DNA of 64,000 nt from Macrostomum lignano (lineage: Eukaryota), in assembly GCA_002269645.1 (NCBI GenBank), contig NIVC01001069.1:124001-188000 (forward strand). The letters run 5' to 3'. Under the pieces are notes generated by a model. It was not told the DNA's origin, searched no databases, and was given only the letters and a program-made list of their open reading frames with translations. Made by a program: the position numbers and the translations under genes. This document shows positions 1 to 56,470 of the stretch, in pieces; position 1 is the first letter of the stretch; every line of letters begins with the position of its first letter.

Positions 1-2105
1 GAGCTTGCGCTTCGCCATCGCTCTTTGTGGCTTGAAGCTAACGCCAGCCTCGATGAGCCGGCGGGTGGTTTTAGCAGCCTCGCGACGGACAAAGATGTCC
101 AGAGGCGGGAGGCAAAGAAAGGCGTTGAGGCCGTTATAGGGAGCAGAGAGCGGGGCATTCAGGATCATGCGGCACGCGCGTCCCTGCACCTTTTTGAGGG
201 CTTCGTGGCAGGTTTTAATCTGCAAGGCGCAGGTCCAGACCAGGCCGGCGTAAGTGACGGCCGGTCGGACCATTGCGGTATAGATCCACCAGAGCCGTTT
301 CGGGGTGAGGCCCCAGGTGGTGCCTACGGCTCTGCGGAGCTGCGCAAGAATCGCGAGGGATTTTTTGGTTTTGGCCTGGACGTGAGTGGACCAGCTCAGC
401 CGGTGGTCCAGCGTAACGCCGAGACACTTGGTTTGCTTGCAGGATGGGATTTCCACCCCGTAAAGCTTTAGTGGGCGAATACGCCAGTTAACCCTGCTGG
501 TGAACATGATCGCGACAGTTTTGGTCTCAGAGAGCCTGAGGCCGCACCTGTCCGCCCATTGTTCAGCAGAGCGAATAAAGTTTTGCGGGCTTGGGGACGG
601 CCGGGCTTGGGGATAAAAACCACCTTGGCCTCGGTCCAGGGTTTCGGAACAAAGCCGAGAGCAATGCAAGCTTTCAGAAGCCGGCAAAGGTTCCGCAGGA
701 AACCGGTGCATTTCACCGCCTCCCGCAGGAAGGCTGGCACAACGCCGTCCGGTCCTGGGGATTTGAAGGGTTTGAAGGAGGAGACTGCTTTAGTAACGCG
801 GTCCTCCGTGATGATTGAGTCAGCCAGTACGTGTCCGCCCACTGAGTGATCAGGGGGGTCGGGCCTGGCTGGTTCGTTCGGGAAAAACGCTGTTAGCATC
901 GCTTCCAGTGTTTCTCCTGGGTTCTCAGTGAGCGAGCCGTCGGCTCTCTTGACTGAAGAGAGTTTGGACATTTTGTCCAGGGTGAGGGCTTTAACGATTC
1001 TGGAGGTGGGGCGGGAGCCCTCAAGTTCCTCACAGTATTCGCGCCACTTGTTGGTTTTGGCGTTCCTAACCTGCCTCTTGAACTCGTGGATAGAGTTCAG
1101 GTAGGCGGTTTGGTCGGCCGGGTTTTTAGTTTTTTGGGCCCTGCGGTGAAGCCTTTTGGCTCTGCGACGGAGGTCGCCAAGCTGCGGGTTCCACCATGGG
1201 GCCGACTGTTTGCCTTTATATGCCTTTAGTGGGCATGAGGCTTCGAAGGCAGCAGTGAGCGAGTCCGTAAGTGCGGCCGCAAAATCATCTGCTTCCTCGC
1301 AGGTGTTGATGGAGACTGGAGCGCTAGTGCAACGATGGGTCTCCTCTAGGGCAAGCCTGAAGGCGGTCCAGTCGGTATTCCTAGCATTCCGTTTCCAGTA
1401 AAGCTGGCCTGCGTTTCGAGCGCTGGCCAGCGTGAAAGAGATGAACTTGTGATCGGAGAGGGACGCCTCAGGAAGCACCCGCCACTCCCTAGTGCTCTGG
1501 AAGAGCCTGGGCGTGGCGAGGGTGGCATCCAGCACCTCCGATCGGCGTCCGTTATTGAAGGTAGGGGTACTACCCGAGTTACAGAACTCAAGGGTTGTAG
1601 TAGCAATATAAGCCAGGAAGTCTTCACCTCTCTGGTTAATATCAGAACTGCCCCAGTGGGTATGGTGGGCGTTGAAATCGCCTGCCACAAGCAGCTCATA
1701 ATTTCTGGTGGAGCAGAGCTCGACCAATGTGACAAGCTCCCCTGGGATCATCTCGCCGTCGCCCGGTAGGTAAACCGAGGCGATGAGGGTAGTCCTCCCA
1801 GGGAGTATGTCTTCAGATTGGATGACGCAGATGTCCCTGGTGGACAGGTCCGATCTGAGCCATGCGTTAATAGAACTGGACACCATGATGCAGGATCTTG
1901 GTGTCAGGTTTCCCTCCCGGGTGCCAGCGGTTAAACACTGGTAGCCGGTGGGGACATGTTGGGGCCTGCCCCTTAGCGTCCAAGGTTCCTGGATAAGGAT
2001 AATCTCTGGCGCGTATTGGTCAGTGTGCTTCAAGAGGTTGACCGAAGCAGCAATGCTGTGCTGCAGGTTGACCTGCAAGCAGTGGATGCCCTGGGAGACG
2101 GTCAT
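1..2105 (-). pseudogene. LINE ORF2: APE endonuclease plus RT N-terminus, fused out of frame to the post-catalytic RT region; RT core missing
   Basis: ORF 2105-468 reaches KSPGPDG and WTEAKVVFIPKPGR. At ~586-600 the sequence jumps to QNFIRSAEQWADRCGLRLSETKT in another frame, open from 585 to the window edge. No RPISL, QG or YADD motifs lie between. Confidence 0.88.
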
Positions 2106-3637: not shown

Positions 3638-3842
3638 AGCTGAAAAGCGGGGGAGGGCTACTCGTTACGCGAGTTGAGTACCCGACTGGCCGACACCTCA
3701 AGCCAGCCGGTTTGAAAAAAGGACCGCTAGCGACCGGACTACTCCCCGGCCTTCCAGCCCATCGGCACGGTCAAACACCTTAGGCATTAGAGGGTACGTT
3801 AAGCAGCACCACGGCCTGCAGGCTGGCGAGCCAGACCCGCAT

Positions 3843-4127
3843 ACCCAAATTCGGCCGAAGCCACTGGATAGGGTCGCCAGCGCCGGAGCCCAGTCTGTCC
3901 AGCAGCCCTAGGGTCTGCCTTGAACACACGCGGGGACGGGTACCCCTGGGTCGACTTGCGAGACAGCGTGGGGGAGTCTGCGGCTGCCAGAGGCAAATAG
4001 AGGGTGCAGACCTCCCACCAGCCTTGACCTGCTGAAGATAGGGGCAGGCGTGAAGCATCGCAGACCTTAGCTCGTAGGCCTAGTCTGTCTCATTCTTCAC
4101 TGGCGTGCTGAATACACCTTCGCGTGC
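3843..4127 (-). ncRNA. Candidate HDV-like (nested double pseudoknot) self-cleaving ribozyme at the LINE 5' end
   Basis: Minus-strand RNA: P1 GCACGCG (4127-4121) pairs with CGCGUGU (3932-3926), G1-U wobble included. P3 GGG/CCC (3945-3943/3935-3933); L3 UACCCGU; P1.1 AC/GU (3925-3924); J4/2 CGAA (3853-3850); P2 ACCCAG/UUGGGU. G1 is the element/satellite boundary. Confidence 0.8.
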
Positions 4128-4607
4128 GGGGAATTGTGCAACTCTGCTTCTGGTAGTTCTGAGGGGAATTGTGCAGCTGTGCTTCTGGTAGTTCTGAGGG
4201 GAATTGTGCAGCTGTGCTTCTGGTAGTTCTGAGGGGAATTGTGCAGCTGTGCTTCTGGTAGTTCTGAGGGGAATTGTGCAGCTGTGCTTCGGGTAGTTCT
4301 GAGGGGAATTGTGCAGCTGTGCTTCTGGTAGTTCTGAGGGGAATTGTGCAGCTGTGCTTCTGGTAGTTCTGAGGGGAATTGTGCAGCTGTGCTTCTGGTA
4401 GTTCTGAGGGGAATTGTGCAATTCTGCTTCTGGTAGTTCTGAGGGGAATTGTGCAGCTCTGCTTCTGGTAGTTCTGAGGGGAATTGTGCAGCTGTGCTTC
4501 TGGTAGTTCTGAGGGGAATTGTGCAGCTCTGCTTCTGGTAGTTCTGAGGGAAGTTGTGCAGCTGTGCTTCTGGTAGTTCTGAGGGGAATTGTGCAGCTGT
4601 GCTTCTT
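4128..4607. repeat. 35-bp minisatellite (GGGGAATTGTGCAGCTGTGCTTCTGGTAGTTCTGA), ~14 units
   Basis: Direct tandem units. The same family occurs at ~14400-14957 (same orientation) and ~11977-12380 (inverted). Confidence 0.97.
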
Positions 4608-4829: not shown

Positions 4830-7800
4830 ATGCAAAAGAGCGGAAGTATTAAGGTGAATTTCGGTAAGTGCTCTGTAGCCGACAAAACAGATTTTATTAC
4901 ACCAAATTATTGCCTGAAATCGCCACAAACCTGTGCACTCGCGTCTTTGTAGATGATTTTCAACTTTCGGCCCAAATACTTAATTCCGTGAGGCGGCCGG
5001 GCAAGGTCAAGTGGTTCGATGTCGCTCGAGGCTTCGGCTTCATCCTGCCGGACGACCGAGGTCGGAATGTCTTCGTGCATCAGGTGTGCTGCGGCGGGGC
5101 TTGAGTAGCCCTCGGTTGCTATGGGGTTTCGTTGAGTAGTTTTGGTTGTCGAGCGTTTCAATTTTTTGTATTAGGTTTGATTGCTATGGTGTCTCTTTGA
5201 GAAAGTTTGGTTGCTATGGGGTTTTCTTGAGTCGGTTTTTTCTTTTTATGGCTTTCCTTGAGTAGTTTTTTATTAGGTTTGATTGCTGTTGTTTTCTTGA
5301 GCCGTGACTAGGTATGGTTGCTATGGGGCTTCCTTGAGTAGGTTTGGTTGCAATGGAGTTTCTTTCAGTAGGTTTAGTCGCTATGTGGTTTTCTTGAGTA
5401 GTTTTGGTTGCAATGGAGTTTATTTCAGTAGGTTTAGTCGCTATGTGGTTTTCTTGAGTAGTTTTGGTTGCAATGGAGTTTCTTTCAGTAGGTTTAGTCG
5501 CTATGTGGTTTTCTTGAGTAGTTTTGGTTGCAATGGAGTTTCTTTCAGTAGGTTTAGTCGCTATGTGGTTTTCTTGAGTAGTTTTGGTTGCAATGGAGTT
5601 TCTTTCAGTAGGTTTAGTCGCTATGTGGTTTTCTTGAGTAGTTTTGGTTGCAATGGAGTTTCTTTCAGTAGGTTTAGTCGCTATGTGGTTTTCTTGAGTA
5701 GTTTTGGTTGCAATGGAGTTTCTTTCAGTAGGTTTAGTCGCTATGTGGTTTTCTTGAGTAGTTTTGGTTGCAATGGAGTTTCTTTCAGTAAGTTTAGTCG
5801 CTATGTGGTTTTCTTGAGTAGTTTTGGTTGCTATTTCACTGGTACATCTTTGAGTTCCACCAAATCTAACAGCATCCCTCTTGAATCTCCATCAAGTCCG
5901 CCATCTGCATGCCGGGATTTCGAAACCTCTGTCCTGACGAGCTGGTGGAGTTTGAGACCCGGGCAGCCGAGAAGGGCCTGGAGGCTCGTCTGGTCACCGG
6001 ACCCGGCGGGGTTCCGTGCCGCGGCGCCGAGAACGTCGGGCAGAGACGGATGCTGAAGTGAGGCTGAATTGATGAGGCTGCAAGTGTGGGACTGAGATGT
6101 ACTTAAATATAATATTTTAACTGGAATTTACTTTAGGGATTCGAATTGGGCTTCTTAAACTAGAAATGAGTGTTATAAAACTCAAAGTAAGAATTGGGAA
6201 ACTCATAGTGAGGATTAGAGAACTCAAAGTGAGGATTAGGGAACTCAAAGTGAGGATTAGGGAACTCAAAGTGAGGATTAGGAAACTCGAAGTGAGGATT
6301 AGGGAACTCAAAGTGAGGATTAGGGAACTCGAAGTGAGGATTAGGGAACTCAAAGTGAGGATTAGGAAACTCAAAGTGAGGATTAGAGAACTCAAAGTGA
6401 GGATTAGGGAACTCGAAGTGAGGATTAGGGAACTCAGTGAGGATTAAGGGAACTAAAAGGGAGGATTAGAGAACTCAAAGTGAGGATTAGGGAACTCAAA
6501 GTGAGGATTAGGGAACTCAAAGTGAGGATTAGGGAACTCAAAGTGAGGATTAGGGAACTCAAAGTAAGGATTAGGGAACTCAAAGTAAGGATCAGGGAAC
6601 TCAAAGTGAGGATTGTGTAGTGAGCCGCTAGTTTAGTGTTTGGCGGGCCCCTTTGTCAGCAGTCAGCAGCCTCGCCCTGGGTTGCTGTCTGCCGCTGGTC
6701 AGCTTCCCGCCCCCTTGGCCGTCTGTTGCTGCCCTTGGCCTGTTCTGCCCTTCTGCGTCTCTGTTCTCAGCCCTCAGCTTCTCTGCTGTAGGCTGTTTCT
6801 GTTTCGTTCCGGTCCCGTTTTGCTCACATGACAGATCTTGCGTTCTTGGAGTCTTAAAGTGCAGTAAACATGTTTACTGCACTCGTTGGCCCTGTTTACC
6901 GGGAGAATCGCGTGCTTTCGGACCTCTCCCTTCTCTAAGGAGAGGAGTGACTCATGTTGCTAAAAATAGCAACTGAGTCACAGCCGCGTGTAGTCTGGCC
7001 GGAGACCTCAAGTGACGTCAGTTCTAAAAATAGAACGAGTCACGAGGTCTTGTGCGTGGGTGTCTCCCGGCTATAAATAGGACCCCTCTCTCCTTGTTTC
7101 CGTCAAGGAGGCTTCTTATCTGCGGAGAATCCACTAAGCTCCCGTGTGCGTCAGTGTCTAACTAAGTGCCCTTTGCGTACACTGAATCTGCTTGTACTGG
7201 TCTGACTGAGACCCCACTAAAGCCCAACCTCAAGCCTACGAGAGGCTAACTCAGCCCTCCCTGAACCAACCAAGCCCGGCAGGTGCTGCTGACGAGACGC
7301 CTTGTACGTTGAACTGCAAATCTGCACCCGGTGCTGAGTTCGTTGACTTCGTTATTTCGTTCCGACGGGAAGCTCACCTCATCGAAGGCCGAGACCTGAA
7401 AGAACTGGTGGCAGCACTACCCACGCTACCGCTACTAAGAGTTAAGAAGGCTTCCGAGTGAGAAGCCGGAGAGCCCAAGTCACTGCGCTGGACAGCAGGA
7501 CCCAAGTCACTTCCGTCTCCCGATCGACAACGCGTTGAAGAAGCTGCCCGAGTATGCTGATCTGCCCGACTACGTCAAGGACTTTCCAATGTCGCCTGGA
7601 CGAGGCGACTGAGTTGGCCAAGGAGCGCCTGCATCTGCATCAGCAACTGCGAGACGAGCACTACTCGAACCTGCCCGCCAGCAAGAAGCTTCAAGCTGTT
7701 GATCTGGTATTTCTCAATAATCCGGCGCTCGAACCGGACGAGGCGGCGAAGTTTCATCGACCGCGCAAAGCACTGTACGAAGTCGTCGAGCCCAAGGGCG

Positions 7801-10800
7801 AGGTCGTCTACAAGATTCGACGTAGACTGCCAAACCCGAGAGCTAGACGAGACGAACTAGTCGTCCATCGCCGGAACCTTCTGCTCGTGCCGGACGCTGA
7901 CTACACGAGGACTTCCGATCCGGAAGTCGACAAGCCAAAGAAGCGTCGGCGACTGCCTGACGTTCCCCACGGCGCAGGACCCGCGACCCTGGCGCCGATC
8001 CCGAGGACGACCAGGACGACCCTGAAGATGACGAGGATGACGGCTACGACGCAAGGCCGGCCTTCCGATGGCACTTCCGGCCTTTGGCGATCCCGGAGGT
8101 GCAGCCAGGAGGTGGACCGGTCACGACACCAGCGAACCAGCGCAGAAATGCACCCTCAACGCTCTGCGAAGCGCACGGAGCGCTCGTCCTCCGAGGAGAG
8201 CCAACGCCAGATTCGTCGCCGAGACGCCTTGGCCCCAGGATTTCCCGGCCAACCCATTGGCGCGGCCGCTGGCCAGTACGAGCCATTTGGCGGCTCTCGG
8301 GATGCGCCCCGCATCCCCCCACAGTATCGAATCGGCTCGCGGCGCAGCAGCCGGCCGGCGTCACCGCCATTAAGGCCCCGTTCGCCGCCCCCTGAGCGGC
8401 GCCCGTCAAGAAGATCGCGCCGCAGGTGCAGGGCTGGACGTCGCCAGACGGACCCTGAGGATGGGGTCAGCCGCGCTTTGGCCGAGATTCGCCAACAGGT
8501 CGAGCCGAACAAGATCGTAAAACTGCGCGGACAGTGCGTGAGCAACACCCGACCGGAGCTGGGGCAGCCTCACCGCCACTGTTTATCGACCTCACCCAGC
8601 CAGACACCCCTGTCCGCCGCCTAAAGGTCGAAAAGGTCGAGGACAGTGCTGGCATCCAAGACGCCGTGTCACGAGGCACCGCTGCGGTGCGGCGGCAGCT
8701 ACAACCGCGCCGACCCGAGGCCCCGGCCCCCGCGGCACCTGCGACGGTGCAGGCGGCCGAACAGCCAGCTCTACAACCGGAGGCACTCGCCGAGGACCGG
8801 AAGCCGACAGCGGAAGCCGCTTGTCAGGCGGACCCGCCCCCGAGGACCGAGCTCCCGAGACAACCGATTGGTCGGGCCTGGCTACGGACCTCCGCCAAGC
8901 TCTCGGCGTCCCTGACTACCCGGCGACAGCGGCCCCGCCCAACTCACCGGAGCTCCCGACGGCCGCCCCGGACGCGGCCGAGACCAAGCCCGCGGTACAG
9001 CGCCAGGCCCCTTCGCTGAGGGACGGTCAGGTAGCGGTCACGCGGTATATTGAGACCATCTATTACTTGGGCCAGCAACTCACGGCCGCGGCCCAAGTCG
9101 GAGTCTTGCCGGACCTGACCGCTTGGCCTCGGTGGGCCGCCGTGAGAGCTCTCAACGACGAAGACCGACAGCGGCTCATGGATGAAGTCTCCCACCTGGC
9201 TGCACCGACGCTCCGCGACCCGCCGTACCCCGAAGCGGCGCGCACGACCGCCCGACTGATCGCGGCGCAAATCGGCGGCCGCACTCCAGAGGTACCGGAG
9301 CTCATCCTGCGCTGCGGTGAACCAGGAACTGACTAACTGTGTATGGTGCCGGCATCCCTAGTGAAATTCTTAGCGCCCTTCTGCTTTAGCGCTCTTGCCT
9401 TTGCCTGCGCTGCCTGCGTATGCTCAGGCGCAATCTGCGCCTTCCGTTGCGTTTTGGGCGAATTTTGCCCGTCATTTGACACGTCCCCTAGCCAGTCTGG
9501 CGCATTTTTCTCCCCCCTTCTTTTGTGCCGAATCATTGGGCTTTGCAATTGACTCCCGCAACCCACATATTTAGGCGCCTCTTACTCATAACAGGGCCGG
9601 CGCCCACCTTTTTCTCCATTCGTCTTACCATTAAATTTTGGGGCAGTAATACGGCTCTCGCCCAGCCGCGCGCGTACGGCCCATAGTGGCCCTCGGTTTT
9701 ATCATGTCCCTTGTCCCAAGGGCTCAGGTACCCTTTTGTCCCCCACGGGCTCTGCAATTATTTGACGCACCCCGGTATTTAGGTGCCTTTTCTCATGGCG
9801 GGCCGGCGCCCCCACATTGCGTTTAATCGCGGCCCTGACCCAGCCCAATCCCGCATTAATTTGACAAGCCTGTAACACCTTTTTGCCAAACAAAATATTT
9901 TATCTTCGCAGTTTTACCTTTTTGAATAAAGGCGCGCTCTGCCTTCACTCCGCCTCTTTATTTGAACGGTGAGAGTGTAGTGAGCCGCTAGTTTAGTGTT
10001 TGGCGTCCCCCTTTGTTCCCTCGCCCTCGCCCTGGGTTGCTGTCTGCCGCTGGTCAGCTTCCCGCCCCCTTGGCCGTCTGTTGCTGCCCTTGGCCTGTTC
10101 TGCCCTTCTGCGTCTCTGTTCTCAGCCCTCAGCTTCTCTGCTGTAGGCTGTTTCTGTTTCGTTCCGGTCCCGTTTTCCTGGAGTTTCCCGTCTTCCTATC
10201 TTGCGTTCTTGGAGTCTTAAAGTGCAGTAAACATGTTTACTGCACTCGTTGGCCCTGTTTACCGGGAGAATCACGTGCTTTCGGACCTCTCCCTTCCCTA
10301 AGAAGAGGAGTGACTCATGTTGCTAAAAATAGCAACTGAGTCACAGCCGCGTGTACTCTGGCCGGAGACCTCAAGTGACGTCAGTTCTAAAAATAGAACG
10401 AGTCACGAGGTCTTGTGCGTGGGTGTCTCCCGGCTATAAATAGGACCCCTCTCTCCTTGTTTCCGTCAAGGAGGCTTCTTATCTGCGGAGAATCCACTAA
10501 GCTCCCGTGTGCGTCAGTGTCTAACTAGGTGCCCTTTGCGTACACTGAATCTGCTTGTACTGGTCTGACTGAGACCCCACTAAAGCCCAACCTCAAGCCT
10601 ACGAGAGGCTAACTCAGCCCTCCCTGAACCAACCAAGCCCGGCAGGTGCTGCTGACGAGACGCCTTGTACGTTGAACTGCAAATCTGCACCCGGTGCTGA
10701 GTTCGTTGACTTCGTTATTTCGTTCCGACGGGAAGCTCACCTCATCGAAGGCCGAGACCTGAAGGAACTGGTGGCAGCACTACCTACGCTACCGCTACTA

Positions 10801-11449
10801 AGAGTTAAGAAGACTTCCGAGTGAGTAGCCGGAGAGCCCAAGTCACTGCGCTGGACAGCAGGACAACCACAGGTACAACAATTGGGGAACTCAAAGTGAG
10901 GATTAGGGAACTAAAAGGGAGGATTAGGGAACTCAAAGGGAGAATTAGGGGAACTCAAAGTGAGGATTAGGGGAACTCAAAGTGAGGATTAGGGAACTAA
11001 AAGTGAGGATTAGGGAACTAAAAGGGAGGATTAGGGAACTAAAAGGGAGGATTAGGGAACTAAAAGTGGGGATTAGGGAACTAGAAGGGAGGATTAGGGA
11101 ACTAAAAGTGAGGATTAGGGAACTCAGTGAGGATTAGGAAACTCTAGGATCTCAGACGGACTGAGGGGCAGCTTGTATTCAAACAGAAAATAAGATCTCA
11201 TTTTAGGGCGAACGAATCTCACCTGCCCGCTAAAGCTCTTATAAGTTTGCTGGTCTGTCGACTCTCCCCAGGTGCTACAACTGCGGCCAGGTGTCTGACC
11301 ATCTCGCCGCCAACTGCCCGCTGGGCCCCTTGCCGAAGTGCTGCTATCGCTGCCGCTCAGTCAACCACCTCGTCAAGGACTGCCCGTTTTGGGGCTTTGC
11401 CACCGCCCCAGCTGGACCGCCTGCGGCTGCTGCCCAGGGATACAATTGA
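4830..11449 (+). CDS. lin-28: Lin-28 homolog, copy A (cold-shock domain plus two CCHC knuckles), 167 aa; exons 4830-4863, 4953-5083, 5897-6057, 11272-11449
   Basis: GT-AG splicing gives an open 504-nt CDS: ...[14 protein letters not shown]...VFVHQ|[11 protein letters not shown]...VEF...[12 protein letters not shown]...K|[15 protein letters not shown]...[14 protein letters not shown]. Introns after VHQ and just before CYNC match known LIN28 positions. The start codon is the least certain part; an upstream exon is possible. Confidence 0.93.
5304..5832. repeat. 60-bp minisatellite in lin-28A intron 2
   Basis: Unit TTTTGGTTGCAATGGAGTTTCTTTCAGTAGGTTTAGTCGCTATGTGGTTTTCTTGAGTAG; identical phase on successive 60-nt lines. 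Confidence 0.96.
6200..6615. repeat. 21-bp minisatellite (GGGAACTCAAAGTGAGGATTA) in lin-28A intron 3, split by the LTR element and resuming at 10881-11145
   Basis: Tandem units on both sides of the LTR insertion. Confidence 0.95.
6616..7501 (+). repeat. 5' LTR (last ~16 bp and PBS lost)
   Basis: Matches 9976-10864; TATAAATA at ~7073; diverges from the 3' LTR after CAGCAGGAC. Confidence 0.9.
9976..10880 (+). repeat. 3' LTR, 905 bp, complete
   Basis: Starts TGTAGTGAG, ends GGTACAACA, followed by TSD ATTG. Confidence 0.92.
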
Positions 11450-11539
11450 TATTTCTGAGCGAGTGCTTTGGTTGAGCGAGAGTGAACTTGAAAACTGGTC
11501 AAGTTGGCGAATGAATGACAATAATAGCGACAGAAAGGA

Positions 11540-11965
11540 GAGAGAGTGACAGGAAGGGAGTGACAGAGAACAGGGAGAGTAAGGAAGACAGTAACAGAGA
11601 ACAGAAAAAAAGTGACAGAGAACAGAAAAAAAGTGACAGAGAACAGGAAAAGAGTGACAGAGAACAGGAAAAGAGTGACAGAGAACAGGAAGAGTGACAG
11701 AGAACAAGAAGAGAGTGACAGAGAACAGGAAGGGAGTGACAGAGAACAGGAAGAGAGTGACAGAGAACAGGAAAAGAGTGACAGAGAACAGGAAGACAGT
11801 GACAGAGAACAGGAAGAGTGACAGAGAACAGGAAAAGAGTGACAGAGAACAGGAAGGGAGTGACAGAGAACAGGAAGGGAGTGACAGAGAACAGGAAGGG
11901 AGTGACAGAGAACAGGAAGGGAGTGACAGAGAACAGGAAGTGTGACTGAGAACAGGAAGAGAATG
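11540..11965. repeat. 21-bp purine-rich minisatellite (GAGTGACAGAGAACAGGAAGG) downstream of lin-28A
   Basis: Tandem units; same family at ~12730-13600 (inverted), ~13660-14060 and ~17860-19420. Confidence 0.95.
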
Positions 11966-11976
11966 ACGAATGAACT

Positions 11977-14957
11977 CTTCAGAACTACCAGAAATAGAGT
12001 TGCACAATTCCCCTCAGAACTACCAGAAGCGCAGCTCCACAATTCCCCTCAGAACTACCAGAAGCGCAGCTCCACAATTCCCCTCAGAACTACCAGAAGC
12101 AGAGTTGCTCAGTTCCTCTCAGAACTACCAGAAGCAGAGTTGCACAATTCCTCTCAGAACTACCAGAAGCAGAGTTGCACAATTCCCCTCAGAACTAACA
12201 GAAGCAAAGTTGCACAATTACTCTCAGAACTACCAGAAGCAGAGTTGCACAATTCCCCTCAGAAATACCAGAAGCAAAGTTGCACAATTACTCTCAGAAC
12301 TACCAGAAGCAGAGTTGCACAATTCCCCTCAGAACTACCAGAAGCAGAGTTGCACAATTCCACAAAAACTACCAGTCGCTATTTTCCTTCGCCACGCGCA
12401 GCAACGATTTCTTTCCATCGTGTAGGCATCCCAAGCGGAGTAGCATAACAGCAATTACCGTATTCAGTGCAATTGTTCAGGTGCAGGTGCGGAGAGCCAA
12501 ACAATTTTTCTTTTGTCAAATGCAATCAGGATTTCGGCAGACAAATGCAAGGCACAAAAAATCCCATTTTATTCCATCAATGCGTCACTCTGCTGGGCTA
12601 CCTCTGCTAGTTAGAGAAAACAACTTTGTTGCTTTTGCAAAGTCTGCTTAGTTAATAAACAGGAAAATTAGTGCTGCCACTGTGACACATCTGTGACAAT
12701 CTCTGTTTAGCGACAGATGTGACACACGTTTTCACTCCCTTTCTGTTCTCTGTCACTCCCTTCCTGTTCTCTGTCACTCTCTTCCTGTTCTCTGTCACTC
12801 CCTTCCTGTTCTCTGTCACTCCCTTCCTGTTCTCTGTCGCTCCCTTTCTGTTCTCTGTCACTCTTTTTCTGTTTTCTGTCACTCTCTCCCTGTTCTCTGT
12901 CACTCTCTTCATATTCTCCGTCATTCTCTTCCTGTTCTCTGTCACTCACTTCCTGTTCTCTGTCACTCTCTTCCTGTTCTCTGTCACTCTCTTCCTGTTC
13001 TCTGTCGCTCCCTTTCCGTTCTCTGTCACTCCCTTCCTGTTCTCTGTCGCTCCCTTCCTGTTCTCTGTCACTCCGTTCCTGTTCTCTGTCACTCTCTTCC
13101 TGTTCTCTGTCGCTCCCTTTCCGTTCTCTGTCACTCCCTTCCTGTTCTCTGTCGCCCCCTTCCTGTTCTCTGTCACTCTCTTCCTGTTCTCTGTCACTCC
13201 CTTCCTGTTCTCTGTCGCTCCCTTCCTGTTCTCTGTCACTCCCTTCCTGTTTTCTGTCACTCTCTTCCTGTTCTCTGTCACTCCCTTCCTGTTCTCTGTC
13301 ACTCTCTTCCTGTTCTCTGTCACTCCCTTCCTGTTCTCTGTCACTCTCTTCCTGTTCTCTGTCACTCCCTTTCCGTTCTCTGTCACTCCCTTCCTGTTCT
13401 CTGTCACTCTCTTCCTGTTCTCTGTCGCTCCCTTTCTGTTCTCTGTCACTCTCTCCCTGTTCTCTGTCACTCTCTTCATGTTCTCCGTCATTCTCTTCCT
13501 GTTTTCTGTCACTCCCTTCCTGTTCTCTGTCACTCCCTTCCTGTTCTCTGTCACTCTCTTCCTGTTCTCTGTCACTCCCTTCCTGTTCTCTGTCACTTCC
13601 TTTCTGTTTTCTAATCCATTTAAAAAAAAAAACAAGGCCGTCTTTAAACAGGAAGAAAGTGACATTCAACAGGAAGAGAGTGACAGAGAACAGGAAGTGT
13701 GACATAGAACTGAAAAAGAGTGACAGAGAACGAACAGGAAGAGAGTGACAGAGAACAGAAAGAGAGTGACAGAGAACAGGAAGGGAGTGACAGAGAACAG
13801 GAAGAGAGTGACAGAGAACAGGAAGGGAGTGACAGAGAACAGGAAGGGAGTGACAGAGAACAGGGGGAGAGTGACAGAGAACAGAAAGAGTGACAGAGAA
13901 CGGAAAGGGAGTGACAGAGAACAGAAAGAGAGTGACAGAGAACAGGAAGGGAGTGACAGAGAACAGGAAGGAAGTGACAGAGAACAGGAAGGGAGTGACA
14001 GAGAACAGGAAGAGAATGACGGAGAACAGGAAGGGAGTGACAGAGAACAGAAAGGGAGTGAAAACGTGTGTCACATCTGTCGCCAAACAGAAGTTTCACA
14101 GATGTGTCACAGCTGCAGCACTAATTTTCCTGTTTATTAACTAAGAAGACTTGCAAATGCAACAAAATTTCTCTAACTAGCAGAGGCAGCCCAGCTGAGC
14201 GACGCATAGATGGGATAAAATGGGATTGATTTTTTGTCTGCCGAAATCCTGATTGCTTTTAACGAAAGAAAAATTGTTTGGCTCTCTGCACCTGCACCTG
14301 AATAATTGCGCTAAATAATTGCTGTTATGCTACTCCGCTTGGGATGCCTACATGATGGGGAGAAATCGTTGCTGCGCGTGGCGAAGGAAAATAGCGACTG
14401 GTAGTTTTTGTGGAATTGTGCAACTGTGCTTCTGGTAGTTCTGAGGGGAATTGTGCAACTCTGCTTCTGGTAGTTCTGAGGGGAATTGTGCAACTCTGCT
14501 TCTGGTAGTTCTGAGGGGAATTGTGCAACTCTGCTTCTGGTAGTTCTGAGGGGAATTGTGCAACTCTGCTTCTGGTAGTTCTTAGGGGAATTGTGCAGCT
14601 CTGCTTCTGGTAGTTCTGAGGAGTATTGTACACCTCTGCTTCTGGTAGTTCTGAGGGAAATTGAGCAGCTGTGCTTCTGGTAGTTCTGAGGGGAATTGTG
14701 CAACTCTGCTTCTGGTAGTTCTGAGGGGAATTGTGCAACTCTGCTTCTGGTAGTTCTGAGGGGAATTGTGGAGCTGCGCTTCTGGTAGTTCTGAGGGGAA
14801 TTGTGCAGCTGTGCTTATGGTAGTTCTGAGGGGAATCGTGCAGCTGTGCTTCTGGTAGTTCTGAGGGGAATTGTGCAGCTGTGCTTCTGGTAGTTCTGAG
14901 GGAAGTTGTGCAGCTGTGCTTCTGGTAGTTCTGAGGGGAATTGTGCAGCTGTGCTTC
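11977..14957. repeat. ~3-kb imperfect inverted repeat (foldback), centre at ~13610-13660
   Basis: Left arm: 35-bp array (inverted), unique ~350 bp, 21-bp array (inverted). Right arm: 21-bp array, unique ~350 bp, 35-bp array. The unique parts are reverse complements, e.g. GTTAATAAACAGGAAAATTAGTGCTGC at ~12651 versus GCAGCACTAATTTTCCTGTTTATTAAC at ~14115. Confidence 0.92.
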
Positions 14958-15186
14958 TTAAGGTGGTGAAGCTCTGCTAAAAAATAGTCTTGAGCCTGAT
15001 AATTAAGTGTGGAATTTGTTTGGAAAAATCCTATCTTCTGAGCGGGACTGGATAATTGTTCTGAGGTAATTGGTCTTTAAGCGCTGCAGCTTGCTTATAA
15101 AAGACGGCATGGTTTTCTTTTTTAGAATGAAGAAAACAACCGGGCCTATTTTCTTGCATCTAAATTATAATCTGTTGTTAGCAGCA

Positions 15187-17777
15187 ATGCAAAAGAGCGG
15201 AAGTATTAAGGTGAATTTCGGTAAGTGCTCTGTAGCCGACAAAACAGATTTTATTACACCAAATTATTGCCTGAAATCGCCACAAACCTGTGCACTCGCA
15301 TCTTTGTAGATGATTTTCAACTTTCGGCCCAAATACTTAATTCCGTGAGGCGGCCGGGCAAGGTCAAGTGGTTCGATGTCGCTCGAGGCTTCGGCTTCAT
15401 CCTGCCGGACGACCGAGGTCGGAATGTCTTCGTGCATCAGGTGTGCTGCGGCGGGGCTTGAGTAGCCCTCGGTTGCTATTGGGTTTCGTTGAGTAGTTTT
15501 GGTTGTCGAGCGTTTCAATTTTTTGTATTAGGTTTGATTGCTATGGTGTCTCTTTGAGAAAGTTTGGTTGCTATGGGGTTTCGTTGAGTAGTTTTGGTTG
15601 CAATGGAGTTTCTTTCAGTAGGTTTAGTCGCTATGTGGTTTTCTTGAGTAGTTTTGGTTGCAATGGAGTTTCTTTCAGTAGGTTTAGTCGTTATGTGGTT
15701 TTCTTGAGTAGGTTTGGTTGCAATGGAGTTTCTTTCAGTAGGTTTAGTCGCTATGTGGTTTTCTTGAGTAGTTTTGGTTGCAATGGAGTTTCTTTCAGTA
15801 GGTTTAGTCGCTATGTGGTTTTCTTGAGTAGTTTTGGTTGCAATGGAGTTTCTTTCAGTAAGTTTAGTCGTTATGTGGTTTTCTTGAGTAGTTTTGGTTG
15901 CAATGGAGTTTCTTTCAGTAAGTTTAGTCGTTATGTGGTTTTCTTGAGTAGTTTTGGTTGCTATTTCACTGGTACATCTTTGAGTTCCACCAAATCTAAC
16001 AGCATCCCTCTTGAATCTCCATCAAGTCCGCCATCTGCATGCCGGGATTTCGAAACCTCTGTCCTGATGAGCTGGTGGAGTTTGAGACCCGGGCAGCCGA
16101 GAAGGGCCTGGAGGCTCGTCTGGTCACCGGACCCGGCGGGGTTCCGTGCCGCGGCGCCGAGAACGGCGGGCAGAGACGGATGCTGAAGTGAGGCTGAATT
16201 GATGAGGCTGCAAGTGTGGGACTGAGATGTACTTAAATATAATATTTTAACTAGAATTTACTTTAGGGATTCGAATTGGGCTTCTTAACGGTAAGCCGAC
16301 GGATGTCCCGAAAACGGGACAAGCAGCCACTTCTGCTTCAGCCGAAAACTTAAAACTAAGCTCTATGGTCAAAACTGCAGCTGCGCTGCACTGCCGTTGC
16401 CGACGGCTGTGTCCCAAAAACGGGACACACTGCTTTATTTTAATTTAAAATAAGTGAAAGTGCTAACAGAACAGAAACAGGATTAGAACAGATAATTTTT
16501 GATTGACACCATAGCAACGGAAAGCTCTTTTTAAGGGTACTCCATAAATATTTACTTAAATTTTATTCAAGGGTGGGGACAAAAAAGGGAGCGGGATAGG
16601 AATGGAGAGAGCAAAGTCAACCGGGGGGTGTGGAAGAAAAAAACATAATGACGAGGTCTGTAACAGTCAGTGCGGTTGGCTGTGCCAGTTTCTGAAGCAC
16701 TGGCCTATGCAAATTGCTGGTTCTCCCGGACAATCAGGGCATATGTACACTGTCTTCTTCGCGATTCGGTTCTCGCTGCACACGCGGCATCGATTGCGCG
16801 GCCGAACATGGGCAGCGTTCAATGGAGCTTTGGTCGGCAAATGCTGTACTGCAGGGCCGTCACCTGCCGGTCCGACTGCTGCAGGACGGCCTGCCCTGAC
16901 AGCGAAATGGCGCCTGCCCCTGCCAGTCTCCTCCACCAAGATGCTGACCGCTTTGCGCAGAAACGCCACGAAAGTCTTGGTACCTCCGTTCTGGCGGTAG
17001 ACGATCCACGAGTTCCGAACCAGAAGCAGCAGCAGGTAAAACGCGAGTTTCTGAAACCAGCGCAGCGTTTTCCGGCTGGCCAGGTAGGGGTTCGCTGCCG
17101 AATCCATACGGTCCACGCCGCCCAAACTCTTCGAGTAGGTGACCACTGTCACTGGCTTCGCGATCACCTGCTGCTCGCCTCCCCGACGGACTCGTGGCAC
17201 GTTCACACAGCCTGCAGCATCTCCTGCAGCCTGCCCAGCAGTGTCCAGGAGATACACGGTCTTTGTTCCGCTGCTCTTCCTGTCCACGAACTTACAAGCG
17301 AGCACCTCAATTAGGGAACTCAAAGTGAGGATTAGGGAACTTAAAGTGAGGATTAGGGAACTCAAAGTGAGAATTAGGGAACTTGAAGTGAGGATTAGGG
17401 AACTAAAAGGGAGAATTAGGGGAACTCAAAGTGAGGATTAGGGAACTAAAAGTGAGGATTAGGGAACTAAAAGGGAGGATTAGAATAAAATATTAGATTT
17501 AGATTTATTAGATTAAAATAAGATCTCATTTTAGGGCGAACGAATCTCACCTGCCCGCTAAAGCTCTTATAAGTTTGCTGGTCTGTCGACTCTCCCCAGG
17601 TGCTACAACTGCGGCCAGGTGTCTGACCATCTCGCCGCCAACTGCCCGCTGGGCCCCTTGCCGAAGTGCTGCTATCGCTGCCGCTCAGTCAACCACCTCG
17701 TCAAGGACTGCCCGTTTTGGGGCTTTGCCACCGCCCCAGCTGGACCGCCTGCGGCTGCTGCCCAGGGATACAATTGA
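15187..17777 (+). CDS. lin-28: Lin-28 homolog, copy B, 167 aa; exons 15187-15220, 15310-15440, 16027-16187, 17600-17777
   Basis: Same exon lengths and splice sites as copy A. The coding differences I saw are one synonymous change (GAC/GAT) and one V>G change (ENVG versus ENGG) in exon 3. Confidence 0.93.
15575..15962. repeat. 60-bp minisatellite in lin-28B intron 2 (fewer units than copy A)
   Basis: Same unit as 5304-5832. Confidence 0.95.
16289..17308 (-). mobile_element. piggyBac (PGBD4-like) transposon fragment: one terminus plus the C-terminal transposase; 5' truncated
   Basis: Starts right after TTAA (16285-16288), where copy A lacks it. Subterminal palindromes TGTCCCGAAAACGGGACA and TGTCCCAAAAACGGGACA. 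Peptide [19 protein letters not shown]...[15 protein letters not shown]...NSWIVY with a Cys-rich tail RCRVC...[22 protein letters not shown] (stop at 16667). Confidence 0.92.
17309..17485. repeat. 21-bp minisatellite (GGGAACTCAAAGTGAGGATTA) in lin-28B intron 3
   Basis: Same unit as in copy A intron 3. Confidence 0.93.
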
Positions 17778-17859
17778 TATTTCTGAGCGAGTGCTTTGGT
17801 TGAGCGAGAGTGAACTTGAAAACTGGTCAAGTTGGCGAATGAATGACAATAATAGCGAC

Positions 17860-19420
17860 AGAAAGGAGAGAGAGTGACAGGAAGGGAGTGACAGAGAACA
17901 GGGAGAGTAAGGAAGACAGTAACAGAGAACAGAAAAAAAGTGACAGAGAACAGGAAGAGTGACAGAGAACAGGAAGAGAGTGACAGAGAACAGGAAGGGA
18001 GTGACAGAGAACAAGAAGAGAAAGACAGAGAACAGGAAGAGAGTGACAGAGAACAGGAAGGGAGTGACAGAGAACAAGAAGAGAAAGACAGAGAACAGGA
18101 AAAGAGTGACAGAGAACAGGAAGAGTGACAGAGAACAGGAAGAGAGTAACAGAGAACAGGAAGGGAGTGACAGAGAACAGGAAGGGAGTGACAGAGAACA
18201 GGAAGGGAGTGACAGAGAACAGGAAGGGAGTGACAGAGAACAGGAAGACAGTGACAGAGAACAGCAGAAGTTTGACAGAGAACAGGAACAGAGTGACAGA
18301 GAACAGAAAGGGAGTGACAGAGCACAGAGAGAGTGACAGAGAACAGGGAGAAAGTGACAGAGAACAGGGAGAGAGTGACAGAGCACAGAAAGAGTGACAG
18401 AGCACAGGGAGAGAGTGACAGAGAACAGGAAGGGAGTGACAGAGCACAGAGAGAGTGACAGAGCACAGAGAGAGTGACAGAGAACAGGTAGAGAGTGACA
18501 GAGAACAGGGAGAGAGTGACAGAGAACAGGGAGAGAGTGACAGAGAACAGGAAGAGAGTGACAGAGCACAGGGGGAGAGTGACAGAGCACAGGGAGAGAG
18601 TGACAGAGCACAGGGAGAGAGTAACAGAGAACAGGGAGGGAGTGACAGAGCACAGGGAGAGAGTGACAGAGAACAGGGAGGGAGTGACAGAGCACAGAGA
18701 GAGTGACAGAGAACAGGGAGAGAGTGACAGAGCACAGGGAGAGAGTGACAGAGCACAGGGAGAAGAGTGACAGAGAACAGGAAGAGAGTGACAGAGCACA
18801 GGGAGAGAGTGACAGAGCACAGGGAGAAAGTGACAGAGCACAGGGAGAGAGTAACAGAGCACATAGAGAGAGTGACAGAGAACAGGGAGAGAGTGACAGA
18901 GCACAGGGAGAGAGTGACAGAGAACAGGGAGGGAGTGACAGAGCACAGAGAGAGTGACAGAGAACAGGGAGAGAGTGACAGAGAACAGGAAGAGAGTGAC
19001 AGAGAACAGGGAGAGTGACAGAACAGGGAGAGAGTGACAGAGCACAGGGAGAGAGTGACAGAGAACAGGGAGAGAGTGACAGAGCACAGGGAGAGAGTGA
19101 CAGAGAACAGGGAAAGAGTGACAGAGAACAGGGAGAGAGTGACAGAGCACAGGGAGAGAGTGACAGAGCACAGGTAGAGAGTGACAGAGAACAGGGAGAG
19201 AGTGACAGAGAACAGGGAGAGAGTGACAGAGCACAGGGAGAGAGTGACAGAGAACAGGGAGAGAGTGACAGAGAACAGGGAGAGAGTGACAGAGCACAGG
19301 GAGAGAGTGACAGAGAACAGGGAGGGAGTGACAGAGCACATGGAGAGAGTGACAGAGAACAGGGAGGGAGTGACAGAGCACAGGGAGAGAGTGACAGAGA
19401 ACACAAAAGAGTGACAGAAC
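17860..19420. repeat. 21-bp purine-rich minisatellite downstream of lin-28B
   Basis: GAGTGACAGAGAACAGGAAGA grading into GAGTGACAGAGCACAGGGAGA variants. Confidence 0.96.
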
Positions 19421-36900: not shown

Positions 36901-39900
36901 TTTCAAGCTACGCATTCTTAAATCCCATTTTGGGATATTTTAGGCTACGCATTTCCCGATCCTATTTTGGGATATTTCAAGCTACGCATCCCCAGATCCC
37001 ATTTTGGGATATTTCAAGCTACGCATCCCCAGATTTCATTCCAGGATATTTTAAGCTACGCATCCCCAGATCCTTATTATGGGATATTTCAAGCTACGCA
37101 TCCCCGGATCCCATTTGGGATATTTCTAGCTACGCATCCCCAGGTCCTTATTATGGGATATTTCAAGCTACGCATTCTTAAATCCCATTTTGGGATATTT
37201 TAAGCTACGCATTTCCCGATCCTATTTTGGGATATTTCAAGCTACGCATCCCCAGATCCCATTTTGGGATATTTCAAGCTACGCATCCCCAGATTTCATT
37301 CCGGGATATTTTAAGCTACGCATCCCCAGATCCTTATTATGGGATATTTCAAGCTACGCATCCCCGGATCCCATTTGGGATATTTCTAGCTACGCATTCC
37401 CAGATCCTTATCATGGGATATTTCAAGCTACGCATTCTCAGATCCCATTTTGGGATATTCAAGCTTCGCATTCCCAGATGCCTATATTATGGTACGATTA
37501 AGCTACAAATTTCAGCTCATTTATTAAATAATTATTAATTCGCACTGCACAACCAACAGACCTGATTCATAACAGCAAATCGTTTAATAGCTTTCTTCTC
37601 CGTAACGCCAATGTACTGCTGCTCCAGCGGAACCGGCCTGTAGGTGCTGTCAAAAAAGTGCAGCCCAGTTTTGACGTTGACGCGCAGAAAGCTGGCAACG
37701 CTAGCGTAATTAGGCAGGGTGGCGCTCAGGCCAACAATGCGAACGGCTTCTTGAGTCGATTCCGAGTTGCGTAGAATCCTAGCAACTACAGATTCGAGCA
37801 CGGGACCTCGTTCGTCGTGCAGCATGTGCACCTCGTCTAGAATGATCAGCCTGACTAGCTGGGTGTACGTCCGCTCCCCGCCTTTGCGAGTGACGATGTC
37901 GAATTTCTCAGGGGTGCACACGATCAGCTGGGTGTTAGCGATCTCCTCCTTGGTGAGCTGATGGTCTCCGGTCAGTTCGTCCACCGTCAGGCCGAAGCAG
38001 GCCAGGCGCTGACGGAAATTGCCAACCATTTCCTGCGAGGAGGGAAGTGGGATATGGGATTTGCGGCTGCCCTGTCCCATGCCTCGATTCTCCTCATTTC
38101 CCATGCCTCGATTCTCCCCATTTCCCATGCCTCAATTCTCCCTATTTCCCATGCCTCAATTCTCCCCATTTCCCATGCCTCAATTCTCCTATTACCCATG
38201 CCTCAATTCTCCTCATTTCCCATGCCTCAATTCTCCCCATTTCCCATGCATCAATTCTCCCCATTTCCCATGCCTCAATTCTCCTCATTTCACATGCCTC
38301 AATTCTCCTCATTTCCCATGCCTCAATTCTCCCCATTTCCCATGCCTCGATTCTCCTCATTTCCCATGCCTCAATTCTCCTCATTTCCCATGCCTCGATT
38401 CTCCCCATTTCCCATGCCTCAATTCTCCTCATTTCCCATGCCTCGATTCTCCTCATTTCCCATGCCTCAATTCTCCTCATTTCCCATGCCTCGATTCTCT
38501 CCATTTCCCATGCCTCAATTCTCCCCATTTCCCATGCCTCAATTCTCCCCATTTCCCATGCCTCAATTCTCCTCATTTCCCATGCCTCAATTCTCCCCAT
38601 TTCCCATGCCTCGATTCTCCTCATTTCCCATGCCTCAATTCTCCCCATTTCCCATGCCTCGATTCTCCCCATTTCCCATGCCTCGATTCTCCCCATTTCC
38701 CATGCCTCAATTCTCCCCATTTCCCATGCCTCAATTCTCCTCATTTCCCATGCCTCAATTCTCCCCATTTCCCATGCCTCAATTCTCCCCATTTCCCATG
38801 CCTCGATTCTCCTCATTTCCCATGCCTCAATTCTCCTCATTTCCCATGCCTCAATTCTCCCCATTTCCCATGCCTCAATTCTCCTCATTTCCCATGCCTC
38901 GATTCTCCCCATTTCCCATGCCTCGATTCTCCTCATTTCCCATGCCTCAATTCTCCTCATTTCCCATGCCTCAATTCTGCCCATTTCCCATGCCTCAATT
39001 CTCCTCATTTCCCATGCCTCAATTCTCCCCATTTCCCATGCCTCGATTCTCCTCATTTCCCATGCCTCAATTCTCCCCATTTCCCATGCCTCGATTCTCC
39101 CCATTTCCCATGCCTCAATTCTCCCCATTTCCCATGCCTCAATTCCCCCCATTTCCCATGCCTCAATTCTCCCCATTTCCCATGCCTCAATTCTCCCCAT
39201 TTCCCATGCCTCGATTCTCCTCATTTCCCATGCCTCAATTCTCCTCATTTCCCATGCCTCAATTCTCCTCATTTCCCATGCCTCAATTCTCCCCATTTCC
39301 CATGCCTCGATTCTCCCCATTTCCCATGCCTCGATTCTCCCCATTTCCCATGCCTCAATTCTCCCCATTTCCCATGCCTCAATTCTCCTAATTTCCCATG
39401 CCTCGATTCTCCCCATTTCCCATGCCTCGATTCTCCCCATTTCCCATGCCTCGATTCTCCCCATTTCCCATGCCTCAATTCTCCTATTACCCATGCCTCA
39501 ATTCTCCTCATTTCCCATGCCTCAATTCTCCCCATTTCCCATGCATCAATTCTCCCCATTTCCCATGCCTCAATTCTCCTCATTTCACATGCCTCAATTC
39601 TCCCCATTTCCCATGCCTCAATTCTCCCCATTTCCCATGCCTCGATTCTCCTCATTTCCCATGCCTCAATTCTCCTCATTTCCCAAGCCTCGATTCTCCC
39701 CATTTCCCATGCCTCAATTCTCCTCATTTCCCATGCCTCGATTCTCCTCATTTCCCATGCCTCAATTCTCCTCATTTCCCATGCCTCGATTCTTCCCATT
39801 TCCCATGCCTCAATTCTCCCCATTTCCCATGCCTCAATTCTCCCCATTTCCCATGCCTCAATTCTCCTCATTTCCCATGCCTCAATTCTCCCCATTTCCC

Positions 39901-55732: not shown

Positions 55733-56470
55733 ATGCGATTCGAAGGCAAGAGATTCCTCATCACTGGCTGCAACCGGGGCATCGGCCGCGACCTCGCCAT
55801 TTCGTTGGCCAAGCAAGGCGCCGAAGTGGTCGCCTTGTGCCGTTCCGGCCTGTCCGATCTACCGGCGGCTTGCCCCGACCCGGAAGCCCGAGCTCGCCTG
55901 CGCCCCGTGCAGTGCGACCTGAACGATTGGTCGGCCACGCGAAGCCTCGTCCTGAGCCTTGGTCGATTCGATGGTGTTGTTAACAATGCAGGCGTTTCCA
56001 AAAATGAGGCAGTCGGTTCCATCACTGAGGAAAATTTGCAAAACTTGTTTCGCGTCAATCTATTCGCCGCGATCAATGTCGGCCAGACGGCCGCCGAGTC
56101 GATGCAGAGCGGCGCCAGCATAGTGAACATCTCATCGCAGGCCAGCTTCATGGCGCTGCCAGGCCATACGGCCTACGCGGCTTCGAAAGCGGCGCTGGAC
56201 TCGGTAACTCGCAGTTTTGCTTCCGAGCTGGGCAAACGCGGCATTCGATGCAATTCTGTCAACCCTGGCGTGGTAATGACGGACATGAGCCGGGCTTATT
56301 GGTCAAATCCGCAGGTTGGCGAGCCCATGCTCGCCAGGGCGCCGCTTGGCCGATTTGCCGAGGTACCCGAAGTTGTTTCCGTTGTTGAATTCCTACTGAG
56401 CGACGAAGCCAGCATGGTTAATGGCGTGGTGCTACCAGTAGAGGGCGGAGTTTCTGTTAACCAGCTCTGA
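55733..56470 (+). CDS. DCXR: Classical SDR, L-xylulose reductase/DCXR-like, 245 aa, intronless
   Basis: TGCNRGIG, NNAG, VNISS, YAASK, NSVNPGVVMTDM, PLGRFAEVPEVV, LPVEGG. DLNDWSAT and WSNP match DCXR-family features. Confidence 0.88.
   Translation: MRFEGKRFLITGCNRGIGRDLAISLAKQGAEVVALCRSGLSDLPAACPDPEARARLRPVQCDLNDWSATRSLVLSLGRFDGVVNNAGVSKNEAVGSITEENLQNLFRVNLFAAINVGQTAAESMQSGASIVNISSQASFMALPGHTAYAASKAALDSVTRSFASELGKRGIRCNSVNPGVVMTDMSRAYWSNPQVGEPMLARAPLGRFAEVPEVVSVVEFLLSDEASMVNGVVLPVEGGVSVNQL

Follow-up and report, generated by a model that had tools for sequence, protein, structure and literature searches.

The 64,000-nucleotide (nt) stretch of Macrostomum lignano contig NIVC01001069.1 analysed here (positions 124,001 to 188,000, referred to as the window) contains on its minus strand a long interspersed nuclear element (LINE) that starts at G4127, directly against a tandem satellite. 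This locus raises the question of how the RNA of such an element acquires an exact 5′ end. A first-pass annotation of the same DNA had proposed that the element opens with a self-cleaving ribozyme related to that of hepatitis delta virus (HDV). Judged from its sequence, the 5′ end of this LINE likely encodes an HDV-like nested double-pseudoknot self-cleaving ribozyme, and we regard it as probably a genuine 5′-processing ribozyme, at least ancestrally.

The element consists of a 490-nt 5′ untranslated region (UTR), which extends to an ATG at 3637, followed by two open reading frames, ORF1 and ORF2. Protein and profile searches with ORF1 recovered a sole relative, P0001, among 5.8 billion proteins. 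It is encoded on L001, a 4148-bp Joint Genome Institute (JGI) metagenome contig carrying an intact ORF1 of 506 amino acids (aa) and an open ORF2 with apurinic/apyrimidinic endonuclease (APE) and RVT_1 domains. The alignment of L001 with the window starts in the middle of the joining region J1/2 and reaches window position 595, with ~73% nucleotide identity in ORF2. The features of the locus, in window coordinates and following the RNA from 5′ to 3′, are as follows.

4128-4606: 35-bp satellite array (Tandem Repeats Finder: period 35, 13.7 copies, 96% matches)
4127-4121, minus strand: 5′ strand of helix P1, GCACGCG; G4127 is G1 and the first element base, with the predicted scissile bond at 4128/4127
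4120-3952, minus strand: J1/2, 169 nt, a peripheral domain
3955-3946, minus strand: 5′ strand of the proximal P2 candidate, GUCG-A-CCCAG
3951-3946, minus strand: ACCCAG, 5′ strand of P2 in the first-pass model
3945-3943 and 3935-3933, minus strand: P3, GGG/CCC, 3 bp
3942-3936, minus strand: loop L3, UACCCGU, 7 nt
3932-3926, minus strand: 3′ strand of P1, CGCGUGU, immediately 3′ of P3, as the fold needs
3925-3924, minus strand: J1/4, GU, the partner side of P1.1
3923-3854, minus strand: 70-nt stretch, the P4 region in the first-pass model
3898-3923, minus strand: conserved P4 hairpin, UC..GGCAG-A-CC CUAG GG-CUGCU..GA
3882-3897, minus strand: proximal candidate J4/2, C3897-A-G-A, and P2 3′ strand, CUGGG-CUC-CGGC (3893-3882), a zero-spacer match to the descriptor
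3853-3862, minus strand: GGC-UUCG-GCC hairpin, whose last base, C3853, can pair with G3862
3853-3850, minus strand: CGAA, the distal candidate J4/2
3849-3843, minus strand: UUUGGGU, the distal candidate P2 3′ strand
3638-3842, minus strand: remainder of the 5′ UTR, including blocks shared identically with L001
2108-3637, minus strand: ORF1, 509 codons, one in-frame stop at 3361-3359
1-2105, minus strand: ORF2, AP-endonuclease (Pfam PF14529/PF03372) and the start of the reverse transcriptase (RT), continuing beyond the window

The 35-bp satellite lies directly upstream of the LINE in the RNA sense, and the boundary between the two can be placed to the nucleotide. Read on the minus strand, the satellite breaks off mid-unit at 4128, after ...AATTCCCC. 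Its expected continuation is CCCC followed by TCAGAAC, the actual letters are CCCC followed by GCACGCG, and from G4127 onward the sequence is GC-rich and unlike the satellite. The array limit and the phase of the repeat unit both place the junction exactly at 4128/4127, in agreement with the earlier claim that the predicted cut falls on it. The satellite occurs in three arrays of both orientations (4128-4606, 11979-12375 and 14398-14958), and the LINE adjoins only the first. Near the satellite, arrays with 60-bp and 21-bp periods recur as well (5309-6614 versus 15529-17483, and 10881-14061 versus 17310-19418), a pattern suggestive of a large duplication, either segmental or inverted.

All motifs listed by the first-pass annotation are found on the minus strand at the positions it gave. 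The strand order of an HDV-like fold (P1, J1/2, P2, P3, L3, P3′, P1′, J1/4, P4, J4/2, P2′) is present at 4127-3843 or 4127-3889, for a total ribozyme span of ~240-285 nt depending on how the fold closes. GCACGCG and CGCGUGU pair at seven of seven positions, with G4127·U3926 as the closing wobble and six Watson-Crick pairs. GCACGC itself occurs twice in the opening of the element, at 4127-4122 and, 19 nt further on, at 4108-4103. The second copy pairs with P1′ at six of seven positions and might compete with P1 or take its place. P3 and L3 show the 3-bp/7-nt geometry and layout of the CPEB3 ribozyme (PMC4836649): U3942 and G3937 take the U20 and G25 positions, and C3940 that of the P1.1 cytosine. 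The fixed positions of L3 (U..CG; rule from PMC6326823) are satisfied in both the window and L001. The conserved P4 hairpin has as its counterpart in L001 a perfect 8-bp hairpin, GGCAGACC ACU GGUCUGCC.

P1.1 can form in the window from C3940-G3925 and A3941-U3924. The first-pass annotation had described the latter as a compensatory A-U pair; the pair itself is formable, but it is not a covariation, as L001 has U·U at this place and only the L3 side differs. Because L001 keeps GU in J1/4, the A-U pair represents a one-sided improvement of P1.1.

The core of L001 reads ACCCAAA GGG UUCUCGU CCC CGCGAGC GU. It shares with the window P2, P3, the J1/4 GU and L3 positions 1, 3, 5, 6 and 7, and departs from it at positions 2 and 4 of L3 and at two P1′ residues. 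These differences sit where variation is expected from the sequence rules: the fold sets no sequence requirement for position 4 or for P1′, and position 2 belongs to the weaker of the P1.1 pairs. The L3 of CPEB3 is UUCACGU, from which the UUCUCGU of L001 would differ at one position. From their P1′ strand, L001-type elements are predicted to begin with GCUCGCG.

The strict descriptor applied here follows PMC6326823 and demands G1-Y, L3 of the form U-N-C-N-C-G-N, a C-G pair in P1.1 and CRRA in J4/2. Over both strands of the 64-kb window (128 kb) it returned one core and one full match, both at this site, where all parts of the published descriptor are present (7-bp P1, 3-bp P3, J1/4 G-N, P2 of at least 5 bp and J4/2 CRRA). 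When the 4127-nt element was shuffled 3000 times with its dinucleotide composition preserved, the mean number per shuffle was 0.011 for cores and 0.0013 for full matches. With the P1 condition dropped, the descriptor found the homologous site of L001 and nothing else on that contig. A second line of evidence comes from P1 itself. With P1′ held fixed, the seven opening nucleotides of the element would pair with it by chance at a probability of 1.4e-3 if G·U counts and 1.7e-4 if only Watson-Crick pairs do. Among the 550 nt lying upstream of the core, 4127 is the sole site of 7/7 pairing with P1′. The junction is set by the periodicity of the satellite and not by the fold, and therefore the descriptor and P1 odds multiply. 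It is very unlikely that the coincidence of fold and junction is accidental.

The same numbers bear on the idea that 4128/4127 is a breakpoint left by 5′ truncation or rearrangement, with the complementarity to 3932-3926 arising by chance. LINE copies are often 5′-truncated, the single copy in the window leaves the full-length end without an independent definition, and L001 stops short of the region. Against such a breakpoint stand the low chance of a 7/7 pairing given above and a complete 490-nt 5′ UTR that, together with the ORF1 start, is colinear with L001. We consider this explanation highly improbable.

The two strands of P1 lie ~190 nt apart, and the J1/2 domain between them is itself structured. 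In isolation, its minimum free energy (MFE) structure is a closed multibranch domain of -57.6 kcal/mol with an 8-bp closing stem (4092-4085/3966-3959), leaving 28 nt between P1 and the domain. The stems named in the first-pass annotation thus exist, within a region that folds closed as a whole. The inner stem, GGGAG-G-UCUGC (4016-4006) with GCAGA-CUCCC (3981-3972), carries two double compensatory changes relative to L001 (UCUGC/GCAGA versus GAUGC/GCAUC), and the apical hairpin UGCC-UCU-GGCA (3995-3985) is unchanged. Pairwise MAFFT alignment with RNAalifold misaligned this stem; single-sequence folds and hand-registered pairs were compared instead. Both the distance and the structure have precedents: in R2 elements P1 and P1′ are separated by 23 to >700 nt (PMC3774820), and structured J1/2 domains join P1 and P2 and speed up large HDV-like ribozymes (PMC4908430).

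Several observations weigh against the ribozyme, the first group of which concerns its closing. The descriptor scan gave two J4/2-P2′ solutions that have P1, P3, L3, P1.1 and the cut site in common, and the closing of the fold is ambiguous between them. In the distal solution, which the first-pass annotation had put forward, C3853-GAA is followed by UUGGGU pairing with ACCCAG. L001 has CAAA-UGGGU here, and J4/2 thus conforms to CRRA in both sequences. Two points count against the distal closing: its P2 does not join P3 cleanly, as the window has a surplus U and L001 an AA spacer of 2 nt, and this P2 shows no covariation between the two sequences. Its candidate catalytic C is moreover paired in the UUCG hairpin, which is kept in L001 and could sequester C3853, as the first-pass annotation had cautioned.

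In the proximal solution CUGGG pairs with CCCAG without spacers, leaving P4 as the simple conserved hairpin 3923-3898, and P2 extends past a small internal loop through GUCG/CGGC (3955-3952 with 3885-3882). The counterpart in L001 is GCCG-A-CCCAAA/UUUGGG-CAA-CGGC. Here P2 covaries: G3946-C3893 becomes A93-U148, U3954·G3883 becomes C85-G158, and L001 gains one more A-U pair. With P3 enforced and L3, P1′ and J1/4 held single-stranded, the nested part of the proximal closing is more stable than that of the distal one; the difference is ~9 kcal/mol for the window and 4 kcal/mol for L001. The proximal J4/2 of L001 reads CGUG and departs from CRRA. From these folds, the proximal C3897/CUGGG is slightly favoured over the distal C3853/UUUGGGU. 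The original choice of C3853 and UUUGGGU as catalytic C and P2′ is compatible with the descriptor but missed a rival with a longer, covarying P2 and a lower energy, and C3853 is best treated as one of two candidates. In the proximal model the distal GGGU can pair with ACCC in the loop of a CUGG/CCAG hairpin (3880-3877 with 3867-3864), a possible pseudoknot downstream of the ribozyme.

The second group of contrary observations comes from the model searches. A loose descriptor (J1/2 of at most 250 nt, P4 of at most 150 nt, with only the P1.1 C-G pair and CNRA demanded) found this site alone in the window, and also matched in 12% of cases when the 4.1-kb element was shuffled with dinucleotides preserved; a loose match by itself therefore means little. 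Rfam cmscan returned no HDV-family match at the gathering score or at E<=10, whether given the entire window, the segment 3700-4250 or the trimmed core of the window or of L001. The lone match was to a long non-coding RNA, by chance, at E=5.9. Such a miss is expected, because the models cannot encode pseudoknots and penalise a 169-nt J1/2, and we read it as uninformative rather than contradictory. Of the two kinds of model that had been suggested as a check, the strict descriptor matches the site and the Rfam covariance models do not.

The remaining points against the ribozyme concern L001. The comparison comprises just two sequences, and L001, which begins ~100 nt short of the expected 5′ strand of P1, contributes only the 3′ strand of this key helix. 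Furthermore, an internal GCUCGC of L001 (76-81), which corresponds to the 3′ strand of the stem closing J1/2, is likewise 6/6 complementary to the P1′ of that contig. A cut at this internal motif was considered and rejected, as it would strip the conserved, covarying J1/2 from all progeny copies. The pairing is regarded as a competitor or a chance match.

Taken together, these points could indicate that an RNA rich in GC and in helices resembles the HDV-like fold by coincidence. Such an RNA offers many alternative pairings, among them two ACCC and two GGGU segments, nested MFE structures lacking P1, and in L001 a simple nested 6-bp stem between P1′ and 76-81. The conserved blocks run well past the proposed ribozyme, Rfam is without a match, and the loose descriptor has its false-positive rate of 12% per 4 kb. 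We nevertheless find a coincidence rather unlikely, given the 0.0013 strict matches per 4.1 kb of shuffled sequence, the independent 7/7 pairing of P1′ with the first 7 nt (p ~1e-3 to 1e-4), and the L3 residues U/C/C/G, which are invariant in both homologs while positions 2 and 4 vary.

A related explanation accepts a true HDV-like lineage but takes the ribozyme of this copy, or of its family, to be a relic, with cleavage slow or absent through misfolding and the 5′ end set in another way. The stop in ORF1 and the deleted RT would fit a relic, as would the two competing closings and the GCACGC at 4108 with its 6/7 pairing to P1′; the UUCG hairpin, this second GCACGC and the alternative P2′ are the conceivable, though improbable, sources of misfolding. 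Every core position of the window copy obeys the descriptor, however, and the element's 5′ end is G1, as expected if cleavage set the template of this insertion. To a relic we assign only a small probability.

Under the favoured explanation, that of a functional HDV-like ribozyme at the 5′ end, the element would need no precise transcription start of its own and would be transcribed by read-through from upstream, here via the 35-bp satellite. In the read-through transcript, GCACGCG (4127-4121) would pair with CGCGUGU (3932-3926) beside the P3/L3 active site, the structured 169-nt J1/2 spanning the ~190-nt gap between the P1 strands. The cytosine of J4/2 would then cut 5′ of G4127, removing the satellite leader and freeing the element RNA with an exact 5′ end. 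The parts of the fold, their rarity by chance, their agreement with the junction and the core kept in L001 are observed, and from these we infer cleavage, co-transcription and the active J4/2-P2′ closing.

The two mutually exclusive closings, each with C-R-R-A and a GGG-containing P2′, could also be taken to mean that the 5′ UTR is a two-state device, which we think doubtful and quite unlikely. In that case the distal strand, once cleavage has occurred or in its place, would form an H-type pseudoknot with the ACCC in the CUGG/CCAG hairpin loop, capped by the conserved UUCG hairpin, and the switch would couple ribozyme activity to ORF1 translation or ORF-protein binding. A post-cleavage structural switch has been proposed for L1Tc (PMC4035085), and a two-state 5′ UTR would, if true, be a larger and more elaborate form of it.

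By its domains, the host element of the likely ribozyme is an APE-RT(-RNase H) LINE. The window copy is dead, because ORF1 has a stop and ~550 bp are deleted near 595-590, which takes out the RT core and leaves a frameshift followed by the C-terminal part of RT; its 5′ end is nevertheless complete. The copy being dead, the ribozyme was therefore inherited from an active master. ORF1 shows no Pfam domain and no visible CCHC knuckles, and its identity over the alignment to the intact ORF1 of L001 is 52%. The 3′ junction of the LINE lies outside the window. The closest named relative of ORF2 is a protein of the flatworm Macrostomum lignano (66% identity over 149 aa, with RNase H), and ORF2 relatives other than this one and L001 are 30-38% identical; among the closest, P0006, L002 and L004 contain RNase H. 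The insect setting in which the ribozyme was first placed therefore does not hold, as nothing links the element to insects. As to the proposed R1/LOA-like affinity, the combination of APE and RT with RNase H-bearing relatives would presumably fit RNase H-bearing clades such as I or LOA better than R1.

Overall identity between the 5′ UTRs of the window and L001 is ~70-77%. Three blocks downstream of the ribozyme are 100% identical (3751-3722, 30 nt; 3693-3676, 18 nt; 3672-3654, 19 nt), the last two of which lie on either side of a possible bulged hairpin that immediately precedes the ATG of ORF1. The blocks may represent a translation or protein-binding element.

Further copies of the element were sought in several collections. 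The core 23-mer occurs once in the window, and a blastn search of the remaining window with the element found no other copy. Exact-product look-ups for ORF1, the ORF overlapping the ribozyme, a host short-chain dehydrogenase gene and P0006 returned nothing on record, and neither the DNA pattern nor the ORF1 profile recovered a copy from the genome and viral collections. A 26-mer shared by the window and L001 had 0 matches in a metagenome scan of a collection that does not include L001 itself. The one metagenome match to a core pattern of 21 specified bases (L006, 266-290) was rejected as a chance match, since it lies in GC-rich sequence read as bacterial coding and shows no similarity beyond the pattern; it gives an idea of how often patterns of this kind match at random. 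In the contigs whose ORF2 is 30-36% identical at the amino acid level (L002-L005 and L007), the 5′ UTR is absent or unrelated, and the loose descriptor has no match in L002-L005.

HDV-like ribozymes at or near the 5′ end have been described for the LINEs R2, R4, Dong, baggins, RTE and L1Tc, baggins being a member of the LOA clade. Both the mechanism and this kind of element thus have precedents, and the first-pass statement that no such ribozyme was described in this lineage fails for these LINE clades, while it may hold for the host lineage. New are the LINE family, the size of the peripheral domains and, possibly, the host group. In the flatworm literature, HDV-like ribozymes are found in planarian R2 and twister variants in Schistosoma LINEs.

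R2 of Drosophila, silkmoths and others is a close parallel in function, since there, as proposed here, a 5′-terminal ribozyme processes a read-through co-transcript (PMC3774820). In Drosophila R2 the cut falls at the exact 5′ junction, and R2 ribozymes combine a J1/2 that is long and in part structured (216-498 nt in silkmoths and up to >700 nt) with a variable P4 and a J1/4 of 0-2 nt (PMC3774820). R2 differs in having a single ORF, a restriction-like endonuclease and a target in 28S ribosomal DNA, whereas the present element carries ORF1 together with an ORF2 of the APE type and lies in a 35-bp satellite. Outside R2, the LINEs baggins, RTE, R4, Dong and L1Tc carry ribozymes that cut at the first nucleotide, and baggins, RTE and L1Tc are APE-type. 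Compared by description, these ribozymes are compact (77 nt for L1TcRz) next to the ~240-285 nt here. In L1Tc a region downstream is proposed to switch the structure of the 5′ UTR after cleavage (PMC4035085), which is echoed here by the two P2′ strands.

Two further ribozymes resemble individual parts of the fold. CPEB3 is similar in its 3-bp P3, its 7-nt L3 with U20...C22...G25, its J1/4 GU and a 4-nt J4/2 that starts with the catalytic C (PMC4836649), for which C3897 and C3853 are the candidates here. Its P1.1 consists of one G-C pair and U·U (PMC4836649), as in L001, with A-U in place of the latter in the window. CPEB3 differs as a 68-nt mammalian intronic ribozyme with minimal J1/2 and no mobile element. 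In the drz-Agam-2 type, which has a P1.2 domain in J1/2, the J1/2 helix "pinches" P1 and P2 (PMC4908430). The J1/2 of the present element is likewise closed, with a covarying inner stem, and its domain is much larger and multibranched.

If the RNA cleaves, a further, sequence-unrelated LINE family with ORF1 and an APE-RT ORF2 has its 5′ end set by an HDV-like ribozyme, which would support the view that promoter-less LINEs have repeatedly turned to read-through transcription combined with self-cleavage. An APE-type, flatworm-related LINE with an HDV-like ribozyme would also widen the flatworm picture. As a practical lesson, this example shows that covariance-model scans miss such ribozymes where J1/2 is long, and that a descriptor scan anchored at element 5′ junctions finds them.

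Beyond the LINE and the satellite, the window contains several other coding regions. A spliceosomal helicase of the Brr2/SNRNP200 kind (DEAD, Helicase_C, SNRNP200_wHTH and Sec63) has its exons distributed over ~24 kb on the minus strand (21904-45688), and nearly all the sequence between them consists of long tandem arrays with periods of 20-45 bp, such as 143 copies of a 24-mer at 38075-41507. Three host-like regions follow: a DnaJ C-terminal-domain exon (49005-49550, minus strand), an apparently intronless short-chain dehydrogenase of 245 aa (55733-56470, plus strand) and an ankyrin-repeat protein (57614-58459, minus strand); the protein collection has no record of any of the three. The minus strand at 16667-17365 encodes the C-terminal part of a piggyBac-type transposase (Pfam DDE_Tnp_1_7 and its zinc finger). 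On the plus strand, 7554-9336 is taken up by long ORFs that overlap one another, have a high content of Arg, Pro and Ser and match no Pfam family; they may be what is left of another mobile element.

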